This document shows positions 37,952-40,535 of a DNA stretch of 64,000 bases, piece by piece. Origin of the DNA: Magallana gigas (lineage: Eukaryota); the NCBI RefSeq assembly GCF_963853765.1, contig NC_088854.1:16306001-16370000 (forward strand). Reading direction: 5' to 3'. A model generated the notes under the pieces. That model was not told the DNA's origin. It saw nothing but the letters and a program-made list of their open reading frames with translations, and searched no databases. The position numbers and the translations under genes are program-made. Numbering within the stretch: position 1 is the stretch's first letter; the number at the start of each line of letters is the position of its first letter.

Positions 37952-39977
37952 ATGGCGGCAACTGTGTTTATGTGTTCATCTTGTGGAATGTGTTTTGATA
38001 AAGTGGGCTTATTCACGGCTCATAATTGCACAGGTAAACGCAGTATACAAATTATTTAAAATCAAAAAATGTTATTATCTTATAAAGCGACATATTTCTG
38101 GATTGGATGTAAGAAAATGTTAATAACCTAAAAGCTTTGTTGTATAGTAGTTTATACATCGCAGTTTCGTCCTATCTATAAAGTGTATTCCATTGAGGAT
38201 CTTCTGCAGCAGCTTATTTTAAGGCTTAATGAAAGTACGAACTGATTACACGGATGTGATTGATGGGTATTTTTTTTTCATATAAATTATCGTCTCGATA
38301 TTTTTTTAACACGCTATCGAAACCTCAGGTACTTTTTGGGGGGTCTGGAGGAGGAAATAATTGGAGTTATTCCTCACTTACTAATAAAACAGAATCCCAG
38401 GGTTGCGTTTTACCAAGGACGTATATACTATACTATATACTTAGTATATACGTCCCTGGTTTTACGAAAGAATATGGCTTAATTTAAAAATACTAATTAT
38501 TCATTAGTTACTGATAAATTAAACAGTAAAATATACCTGTAGCAGGGCCTATGATTTTTCAAAAAGAAATATTTGATATCAATTTTGCACCATTAAGATG
38601 ACTTGTGAGACTTGAAATTTTTACGACTTTGTTGTAAGTTCTTTTGTAAAACAGGTCCCTGAACCTTTGTCGTATTCTCAACGGAGGAATTTATTTTATT
38701 TTTTTTTGGGGGGGGGGGGGAAGGATTTAATCAATGTCAAAACATATTCACAAATTTTCCTTACTTACCAGCCCATAATTTCATCATATGGTTGAAAGTG
38801 AGCAAACACTGAGTTTTTTTAAGATGGTCAATATTATTTGTATAGCTTAATCTTATTTTTAAATATATCTAGGCAGTAAAAGAAAACCTATTGGCATTGG
38901 AACTAGTGTTGAAGAGGCAGAGGACGTTGTATTAGAGATGAATACAACCCCACAAGAAAGAAGAAGAACTATGTTTGAATGCCAGGACTGTAAAAAGGTG
39001 TTTTACAGTATGGACATTTTTGCAAATCATGTCTGTGTCCAGGCTCAACCTAGCATTAAAGGTATCAATATATTAAATTTAAATTTAACAAAAAGTGACA
39101 TCTCCATGTGAGTAAAGAATTCTCAAGCAGGATAATGCATCCCAAACATACTAATAAGCAAAACAATACTTGTAATTGTTTCATATGCATAGAAAAATTA
39201 CATAAACAAGGGAATTTTACTTTTATATAAAAGTTACACTGAGTGTCACAATTTTGATCTTTTGTCTCTGCAGAGGAATCAACAGCATCCAGCGCTTCAA
39301 CTTCAGAAGGTCAAGATCAAGGTCAAGGTATGTTCTGGACCAGGCCAGCAACCCTCCTTTTGATTGACGAATACAAAAGTAGAATGGATTTGCTAAACAG
39401 TGGAAAGCTAAGAAAGAAATCAATGTGGGATCAAATAAGTAAAGTTTTAAGTGGTAAAGGACATAAAATGTCAGGTGCGCAATGCGAGGGGAGATGGAAA
39501 ACCCTTTTGAGGGGATTAAAAAATGTCCATGATCATAACAAGAAATCGGGAAGGAATCCCAAATATCACCCATATGATAAAGAGTTGGCTTTCATGGCTG
39601 AAAAGCCAAACATTGCAGAGTCCTATGTTGTGTCCTCTGGTAGTGGTAATTCAAAAGCTTCAAAACCTATAGCAGCAAGTTTAACTGCTACTGATAACCA
39701 ACAAAATTTAACTGCGAATGAGTCTGATGCAGAATCAGAAAATTCAAGTAGTAGCGCTTCTAAGAAAGTAAAAAAGGAATCTATTGAATATGAGCCAAAA
39801 CCAAAGAGAAAAAGGTCAAATGAAGTTGTTGAAGTCCTTAAAAATTTCATGGACACCCAACAGAAAAGGTATGATGACGAGTGTCAAAGAAAGGAGAAAA
39901 TGCACAGTGAACGCATGGAAATCTTTGGCGGTTTCCTTGAGTTGCTTAAAAAAGGAGCCAATGATGCAAAAAAGTAG
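37952..39977 (+). CDS. Harbinger accessory protein: two C2HC zinc fingers + Myb/SANT-like (trihelix/MADF-type) DNA-binding domain + C-terminal coiled coil (324 aa)
   Basis: Exons 37952-38033 (MAATVFMCSSCGMCFDKVGLFTAHNCT), 38873-39061 (..FECQDCKKVFYSMDIFANHVC..) and 39274-39977 (FWTRPATLLLI..W..IS..L...G..CEGRWKTLLRGLK). Introns are phase 1-1; total 975 nt, in frame. Confidence 0.82.
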
Positions 39978-40371
39978 AAGGGTTTAATTGTTCAAAACAT
40001 AGAATACTGGCCTAGGGTGTACCTATCCAATGCTGATTTGTCGGTTGTGATTTTTTTTCCCTTCATATTTGCGCAATTTTTTTTAACAGAACACACAATT
40101 ACAAGTAAACTCTCAGTCTGTATATAGTGGTATGTAAAAATGGGATGCCAAATGTGATAATTAGAATCTTGAAACAACACACACCCCCCCCCCCCCCCCC
40201 AAAAAAAAATTTTTTTTTTGTTTCAACTGACGATTATTTGCATTAAAATCTATACTTTTCTGTAATACTTCCATAATTATATTTTTCTTGTTTGTATCAA
40301 TAGCAAATGCATTTTGGTTTGGTTTCAAATTGTGTATGTCACATGTATTATTGCAAATTTATGTTTTACAG

Positions 40372-40535
40372 ATACTGATGTTTGCAAGATATGCATGGAA
40401 GATGAAAATAAAATTGAATGTGCATTTGTTGAGTGTGGCCACATGTTGGCATGTAGAAGTTGTGCCAGTAAACTAAAATCTTGTCCAGTATGCAGGTCTG
40501 AAATACAACAGGTTTTAAAACTGTACAAGCCATGA
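40372..40535 (+). CDS. C3HC4 RING finger terminal exon (IAP/RNF34-RFFL/MUL1 type) inside the Harbinger; alternative 3' exon of the accessory gene
   Basis: tttacag|AT ACT GAT: (D)TDVCKICMEDENKIECAFVECGHMLACRSCASKLKSCPVCRSEIQQVLKLYKP*. All eight Zn ligands are intact. The phase-1 acceptor matches phase-1 donors at 39327 (CAAG|GTATGT) and 39061. Confidence 0.75.

Follow-up and report, generated by a model that had tools for sequence, protein, structure and literature searches.

A PIF/Harbinger transposon of the oyster Magallana gigas whose accessory gene is spliced into a Myb form or a RING form

Among DNA transposons, Harbinger elements are the textbook case of a two-protein system, and they have repeatedly given rise to domesticated genes, among them the pairs HARBI1/NAIF1 and ALP1/ALP2 and the MSANTD genes. 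Harbinger3_DR of zebrafish and the plant elements PIF, Ping and Pong are alike in their terminal inverted repeats (TIRs), a 3-bp target-site duplication (TSD), a DDE_Tnp_4 transposase and a second gene with a Myb, SANT or trihelix domain. In the passages of PMC9392472 that cite Sinzelle et al. 2008, the Harbinger cofactors are described as binding the ends of the transposon and the transposase's N-terminal part, importing the transposase into the nucleus and being needed for transposition. The stretch of DNA analyzed here, called the window below, covers 64,000 nucleotides of Magallana (Crassostrea) gigas (NC_088854.1, positions 16,306,001 to 16,370,000), and it contains an intact, transcribed PIF/Harbinger DNA transposon. 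Compared with the canonical Harbingers, the second gene of the oyster elements adds one or two N-terminal C2HC zinc fingers and a spliced RING exon, which leads to a third product. We could establish that the one accessory gene of the window element gives two mRNAs, zinc finger-zinc finger-Myb (ZnF-ZnF-Myb) or ZnF-ZnF-RING, through a donor at 39327.

In the Drosophila P element, the retention or removal of intron 3 decides whether a transposition protein or a regulatory protein is made. The oyster element is similar in that one intron likewise decides between a transposition protein and a different protein. In the P element, however, the transposase is truncated, whereas here it is the cofactor gene that is switched and the product gains a domain of catalytic type. 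RAG1 harbors an N-terminal RING with reported E3 (ubiquitin ligase) activity, joined to transposase-derived recombination machinery (PMC1131882). Its RING is a constitutive N-terminal fusion that does not come from Transib's transposase, while the oyster RING is an alternative C-terminus of an accessory protein. In squamates, harbingerTRIM is a host TRIM gene adjoining a domesticated Harbinger (bioRxiv 10.1101/2025.06.23.661133); it likewise combines an E3 ligase with a Harbinger, but the element does not encode it, nor is it an isoform of the cofactor.

The accessory gene (plus strand, four exons) and the transposase gene (minus strand) both lie inside the TIRs. The parts of the accessory gene are given below, with a slash at the exon border in the splice sites.

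37952..38033, plus strand: coding part of exon 1 (82 nucleotides), with the start codon and C2HC finger 1; phase-1 donor G/GTAAAC
38873..39061, plus strand: exon 2, with a basic linker and C2HC finger 2 (RRRTMFECQDC...HVC); phase 1 at both borders
39274..39327, plus strand: short form of exon 3 (54 nucleotides), a Ser/Gln-rich linker; alternative phase-1 donor CAAG/GTATGT
39328..40371, plus strand: alternative intron of 1,044 nucleotides; its retention adds the Myb/trihelix domain together with a conserved helical region at the C-terminus, and its removal joins exon 3 to the RING exon
39328-39977, plus strand: tail of the Myb-form coding sequence including the stop codon (39975-39977); completes the 324-residue cofactor
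40372..40535, plus strand: RING exon (C3HC4, IAP/MYLIP type) including the stop codon; C-terminus of the 162-residue isoform and part of the 3' untranslated region (UTR) in the Myb mRNA
40536..41085, plus strand: 3' UTR common to both mRNAs; the RNA contigs stop at 41066 (or 41085)

All three introns of the gene are in phase 1. Joining the exons in silico gave open reading frames (ORFs) of exactly 324 residues by read-through and 162 residues by splicing, each with one terminal stop. The two isoforms have their first 108 N-terminal residues in common, and the 162-residue isoform is without the Myb domain and without the C-terminal helical region. The 324-residue cofactor is the gene model XP_065940966.1 (P0001), and Pfam places Myb_DNA-bind_4 (PF13837) within 39330-39974 (E 9.1e-13). 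The finger motif F-x-C-x2-C-x3-F-x8-H-x-C is encoded once in each of exons 1 and 2 and is kept in all lineages compared. Its pattern is C-x2-C-x12-H-x-C, as against C-x2-4-C-x12-H-x3-5-H in the classical C2H2 finger, and it is a C2HC variant because the last ligand is a Cys at H+2. The Pfam search with the fingers gave no match below E 0.02 (the top one being zf-met, E 0.099), and the phmmer matches to C2H2 arrays in the PDB were marginal (E 0.007 and above).

To follow the two forms in RNA, the region 37700-43250 was compared with two assembled runs of one study (X1 and X2) and with raw poly(A) reads from a different study (X21 and X22); joints were listed if they had 3 or more reads, or a contig. 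The joint 38033>38873 (GT..AG) was present in contigs of X1 and X2, in 5 X22 reads and in four further transcript contigs. The joint 39061>39274 (GT..AG) was present in X1 and X2, in 1 X21 read, in 8 X22 reads and in further transcript contigs. The RING joint 39327>40372 (GT..AG) was recovered at a k-mer depth of 9.4 in X1 and 13.9 in X2 and in 2 X22 reads, and in the same assembled runs the unspliced branch 39298-40344 had a depth of 23.3 (X1) and 16.3 (X2). The unitigs with the RING joint begin 28+2 letters ahead of it, since two alternative continuations of exon 3 would put a branch node there at k=31. No copy of the joined 39327>40372 sequence was found in the genome DNA, even with up to 2 mismatches allowed, so the joint does not reflect a processed DNA copy. 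In four further public runs, transcript contigs contain the complete 324-residue ORF with introns 1 and 2 removed, and one transcript contig (L067) is unspliced from 39272 to 40824, through the RING exon. As unspliced RNA runs through both the Myb region and the RING exon, the Myb mRNA is the form that keeps the intron, and the RING exon belongs to its 3' UTR.

These results bear out the gene structure proposed in the first-pass annotation, which had been made from the letters of the window alone. The exons, fingers, donor and RING exon that it had placed inside the TIRs are all present by sequence, Pfam and the TIR search, and the 324-residue read-through product and the frame-compatible 162-residue ZnF-ZnF-RING product are the exact in-silico ORFs. 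The three joints that it had predicted (38033>38873, 39061>39274 and 39327>40372) all occur in RNA with GT..AG ends. Alternative splicing at 39327 is supported by the RNA joint, by the unspliced form in the same libraries and by collinear gene models of Pecten (see below). Two other in-frame joints, from exon 2 to the RING exon (39061>40372) and from a candidate donor at 39639 that would yield ZnF-ZnF-Myb-RING, were below the listing threshold in the RNA reads.

The RING exon matches zf-C3HC4_3 (PF13920) at 40371-40532 with an E of 1.8e-13, better than the curated cut-off. When eight RINGs (around 50% identity) were aligned, the C3HC4 ligands C4, C7, C21, H23, C27, C30, C37 and C40 were invariant, and likewise M8, F18, G22, P38, R41 and I44. 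Between Cys1 and Cys2 all 8 have Ile or Val, and an aromatic residue is found near the RING C-terminus in 7 of them. We take the Ile/Val between Cys1 and Cys2, the Pro after ligand 7, the Arg after ligand 8 and the C-terminal aromatic residue to be those that make E2/ubiquitin contacts or serve RING dimerization in solved RINGs. The top solved match is cIAP2 (3eb5, E 2.8e-11), followed by cIAP1, MYLIP and XIAP and then by BIRC7, MUL1 and MDM2; as far as the alignment goes, C-K-I-C, CPVCR and the LKLYKP tail of the oyster protein are aligned with cIAP2, where the corresponding motifs are C-K-V-C and CPICR. The resemblance to cIAP2/BIRC3, cIAP1, XIAP and MYLIP/IDOL extends to the RING sequence (E 2.8e-11 to 1e-8), its C-terminal place, the ligand spacing and the CP[VI]CR motif. 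In contrast to these ligases, the oyster 162-residue protein is without BIR or FERM domains, is transposon-encoded and shares its N-terminus with a DNA-binding cofactor. Its RING makes the isoform a probable active E3 ubiquitin ligase.

The M. gigas genome holds eight copies of the element at 92-97% identity, plus one old decayed copy. The eight copies lie in differing flanks, with a 3-bp TSD in every copy examined. The RING exon is intact in 7 of the 8 young copies, at 99.4-100% identity; over all copies it has four substitutions, each private to one copy, and one of these is in the copy with a deletion. The introns differ among copies by around 2.8% with many indels, and the accessory exons are without indels bar one in-frame gap of 3 nucleotides. 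In the old copy on chromosome 5, the RING exon is recognizable and frameshifted.

A second oyster family (family 2) was found by searching the genome with the RING and finger exons. It has two copies of 3.84 kb each that are 99.3% identical (L060:3034-6877, which is C2:2,591,033-2,594,876, and L061:3070-6920, on C1), with intact ORFs, TIRs of its own (GGTTGCGCTCCATTGAC...) and the TSDs ACA and CTT, and it looks recently active. Its order is a finger exon, a Myb ORF, a RING exon with a phase-1 acceptor and a convergent DDE transposase, with amino acid identities to the window element of 58% for the transposase, 42% for Myb, 51% for the RING and 44% for the finger. Its model XP_034307601.1 (LOC105327532 isoform X2, 244 residues) joins finger, Myb and RING, with the donor past the Myb domain. 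In the window element, a candidate phase-1 donor (TCTG/GTAGTG at 39639) is seen just past the Myb domain, near the position of this family-2 ZnF-Myb-RING donor.

The same parts were found in other bivalves. A locus of Tegillarca granosa carries both fingers (1 and 2), Myb, a RING exon that is intact and a DDE gene in convergent orientation, and a locus of Mizuhopecten yessoensis, which contains an assembly gap, has Myb, a RING exon with the same G/AT phase-1 acceptor and a broken transposase. Two Pecten maximus models, XP_033730555.1 (154 residues) and XP_033740288.1 (133 residues), consist of finger, finger, Ser-rich linker and RING and are collinear with the 162-residue isoform; the collinearity and the related Mizuhopecten element suggest that they belong to a Harbinger. 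A homologous-protein search with the Pecten protein P0164 returned its own cluster only, ESM Atlas searches with P0164 and P0012 gave no usable match, and AlphaFold2 run on P0164 without an alignment gave a mean predicted local distance difference test score (pLDDT) of 35, too low for use. The more distant Myb-like genes of the oyster genome showed no RING match nearby. Between lineages, nucleotide similarity is seen only in three islands, namely the Myb core, the RING exon and the transposase. Judging from these alignments, the ZnF/Myb/RING arrangement is conserved over a clade of bivalve Harbingers, in the RING exon and its acceptor phase, and in the nearest lineage also in the donor.

This nearest lineage is a sister lineage known from two contigs, one of a metagenome and one of Logan (L064 and L065), with a transposase that is 88.6% identical. 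It keeps both the donor CAAG/GTATGT just before MFWT and the acceptor ttttacag/at, and a 6-nucleotide insertion after the acceptor preserves the frame. In the distant families synonymous divergence (dS) is saturated and dN/dS, its ratio to nonsynonymous divergence (dN), is only a bound, so that the usable estimate comes from the sister lineage. The values for the window element against it are the following.

RING: dN 0.100, dS 1.03, dN/dS 0.10
Transposase: dN 0.067, dS 0.98, dN/dS 0.07
Myb: dN 0.165, dS 2.75 (saturated), dN/dS 0.06

By these ratios both coding alternatives, RING and Myb, are under purifying selection, the RING as strongly as the transposase. The lineages rank in the same order by RING dN as by Myb-core dN and transposase dN, which favors co-inheritance over repeated capture. 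The conditions that the first-pass annotation had named as refuting it do not hold: spliced RNA reaches the RING exon, the exon's presence in 7 of 8 copies, and beyond them in at least four lineages, speaks against a one-off capture, and with a dN/dS of 0.10 at dS 1.0 the RING is not decaying neutrally. The sister lineage also has a second, degraded RING-like stretch with stops around 220 nucleotides 3' of the intact exon (L064:2447-2539, L065:2914-3006), which suggests an old tandem duplication of the exon.

We consider it likely that the RING isoform self-regulates transposition by ubiquitinating a component of the element's own complex, by way of a splice switch in the cofactor gene. Retention of the intron 39328-40371 gives the frame of the canonical 324-residue cofactor, and its removal that of the 162-residue ZnF-ZnF-RING protein, which would be an E2-binding, probably dimeric E3 ligase encoded by the element. 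Because 108 N-terminal residues are shared with the cofactor, the RING isoform should reach the same partner. The shared fingers would dock it there, on the transposase-cofactor complex or on the transposon ends, and the docked isoform would ubiquitinate a component at that place. Every splicing event also costs the essential cofactor part of its coding sequence, so that the ratio of the two forms would determine how competent the element is for transposition, in the manner of intron 3 retention in the P element. We are more tentative, and lean slightly to the doubtful side, about whether, in this clade of bivalve Harbingers, splice choice and ligase together form a self-contained circuit of transposition control (cofactor made versus cofactor/transposase ubiquitinated), possibly one that is tissue- or germline-specific.

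It is unlikely, in our judgment, that the RING isoform instead acts mainly on a host silencing, DNA-damage or cell-death factor, in counter-defense or host manipulation like the IAP-type and ICP0-type RINGs of viruses. The RING is indeed of the IAP/MYLIP type, long-term purifying selection fits any function that is beneficial to the element, and nothing known ties the 162-residue isoform to transposon DNA, since it is without Myb and C-terminal helix. It has, however, no BIR or other known substrate-recognition domain, its sole other module being the finger pair of the cofactor, and the RING isoform of family 2 keeps a transposon-type Myb, which points to action at the element. We give still less credence to a short isoform that is a non-catalytic competitor, comparable to truncated P-element repressors or KP proteins, which would titrate the finger partner or poison cofactor oligomers and use the RING as a dimerization or zinc scaffold. 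The 108 residues common to both isoforms would suit such a competitor, and P-element repressors are indeed made by alternative splicing, but the E2/ubiquitin-contact residues are kept across lineages at around 50% identity, and a mere scaffold would not need them. A passenger RING exon, captured as a fragment of a host gene and spliced as functionless transcriptional noise, is hardly credible: DNA transposons do capture host exons and C-terminal RING exons of zf-C3HC4_3 are numerous in the oyster genome (69 matches), but the RING dN/dS is about as low as that of the transposase at a dS of around 1, none of the zinc ligands varies among 8 sequences, lineages with unalignable introns share the exon's position, acceptor phase and donor, the exon occurs in two oyster families, the sister lineage, scallops and an ark clam, and disrupted RING exons are limited to the old decayed copy, the deletion-bearing copy and the degraded one of Mizuhopecten.

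Several points weigh against our reading of a spliced RING isoform that regulates the element through its own complex. The RING joint comes from two unitigs of a single study, with 28+2 letters on their short side, and from two raw reads; RNA reads are not assignable to individual copies, and both isoforms are known at the DNA and RNA level alone. A complex prediction with the 325-residue transposase ORF (without exon 1) and the 324-residue cofactor scored 0.32 against a mark of 0.34, and was counted neither way for binding. The annotated RING isoform of family 2 retains the Myb domain and drops only the conserved C-terminal helical region. The RING thus replaces different parts in the two families, and the loss of the cofactor that our model includes may not be general; what is common to both, as their gene structures read, is an N-terminal finger plus RING, minus the C-terminal helix. 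The Tegillarca copy is without an AG at the usual acceptor (cttcttg/ACTGAT; L063:10930-10975), and the Mizuhopecten copy is degraded, with an early stop that shortens the C-terminal tail of the RING.

Two further features of the Tegillarca locus L063 were noted. An 'actgat' repeat is found 33 nucleotides upstream, after a tttag, and the gene model KUTeg_018710, which continues past the Myb ORF's end into the RING, is probably a mis-prediction.

No description of a Harbinger cofactor with a RING isoform was found in full-text literature searches, with Repbase and Dfam lying outside that search. RING and zinc fingers go unmentioned in an animal-wide study of the Myb-like proteins of Harbingers, as do RING domains and ubiquitin in a survey with 58 curated consensus sequences of bivalve PIF-Harbingers. 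Isoforms of the same kind (ZnF-Myb-RING or ZnF-ZnF-RING) are present among the automatic NCBI models XP_034307601.1, M. angulata XP_052688466.1, XP_033730555.1 ('APD1-like isoform X2') and XP_033740288.1 ('LRSAM1-like isoform X2'), where they are labelled as uncharacterized host genes or unrelated E3 ligases and are not recognized as forms of a transposon or Harbinger cofactor. The first-pass annotation had known of no description of the architecture; this stands for papers in the searchable literature, and the NCBI automatic annotation already holds such isoforms under uninformative names. The annotation can be corrected accordingly, several bivalve genes called 'uncharacterized', 'LRSAM1-like', 'APD1-like' or 'GTL1-like' being transposon genes.

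A conserved third product, with a RING that shares the N-terminus of the cofactor, would mean that the element taps the host ubiquitin system with a protein of its own. If the control circuit is true, this would be the first cut-and-paste transposon known with a dedicated ubiquitin-ligase module. The finding opens the testable question of how a eukaryotic cut-and-paste transposon regulates itself or its host.

The element was assigned to PIF/Harbinger because it shows all the hallmarks of the group that can be read from sequence. The inverted-repeat search gave TIRs of 36 nucleotides, 92% complementary, at 37811-37846 and 43137-43172. Comparison of the copies refined the ends to GGGTGTATTTC.../...GAAATACACCC, with 3-bp TSDs, as listed here.

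37817..37846, plus strand: 5' TIR; the transcript contigs of the accessory gene begin to match the element here (from 37815/37817)
43137..43166, minus strand: 3' TIR, from the inverted-repeat search and the copy comparison
37815..37817, no strand: left TSD (TAG); the left TIR of the window copy is one G shorter than that of the other copies
43167..43169, no strand: right TSD (TAG), from the copy comparison

TAG fits both flanks in the window if the left G-run has lost one G. The seven other copies have the same ends, with the identical 3-bp flanking repeats AAA, TAA, TTA, TAG, CTT, AAT and AAA.

The transposase gene has two coding exons.

42962..43074, minus strand: coding part of exon 1, with the ATG at 43074
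42673..42961, minus strand: intron (GT..AG); its joint 42672>42962 is in X1 and X2 contigs and in 1 X22 read
41661..42672, minus strand: exon 2 (DDE_Tnp_4) including the stop codon; RNA contigs span 41299-42672

The two exons join in frame to an intact DDE protein of 374 residues. Pfam places DDE_Tnp_4 (PF13359) at 41664-42638 of the minus strand (E 1.4e-35) and also matches PF04827 (Plant_tran type, E 4.4e-12). In the stranded run X22, a few reads at 41978-42349 are mostly antisense to the transposase and oriented like the reads of the accessory gene, and the single X22 read across the transposase intron is in sense orientation; the read numbers here are too small to interpret.

Some minor observations concern the accessory gene and its transcripts. 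The transcript contigs L067-L070, which contain the 324-residue ORF, extend beyond the TIR, 280-590 nucleotides upstream, where their sequence is not that of the window. At least a part of the other copies' transcripts thus seems to begin in adjoining host DNA, unless the contigs are chimeric. Long runs of G and C followed by A/T runs are found at 38698-38720 (intron 1) and 40184-40210 (alternative intron) and are mutually complementary; a family-2 intron has a similar C-run/A-run (L060:3599-3626), and reads seem to be cut at such runs. At the end of the accessory-gene 3' UTR, where the RNA contigs stop, there are three tandem copies of around 59 nucleotides (40988-41162, 61-81% identical).

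The Harbinger has its insertion site in a palindrome (GACC TAG GTC) within a different, very abundant repeat (37589-37813 and 43166-43250), whose hairpin arms are at 37589-37652 and 37696-37759. RNA depth over these host-repeat flanks is 10-20 times that of the element. An 'empty-site' joint, 37813>43166, was very frequent in all four RNA runs; excision was rejected as its source, and the joint reflects other copies of the host repeat. Farther out, a palindromic repeat resembling a miniature inverted-repeat transposable element, with internal inverted arms, is present in two copies (94-95% identical) at 37299-37540 and 43761-43953, around 6.4 kb apart.

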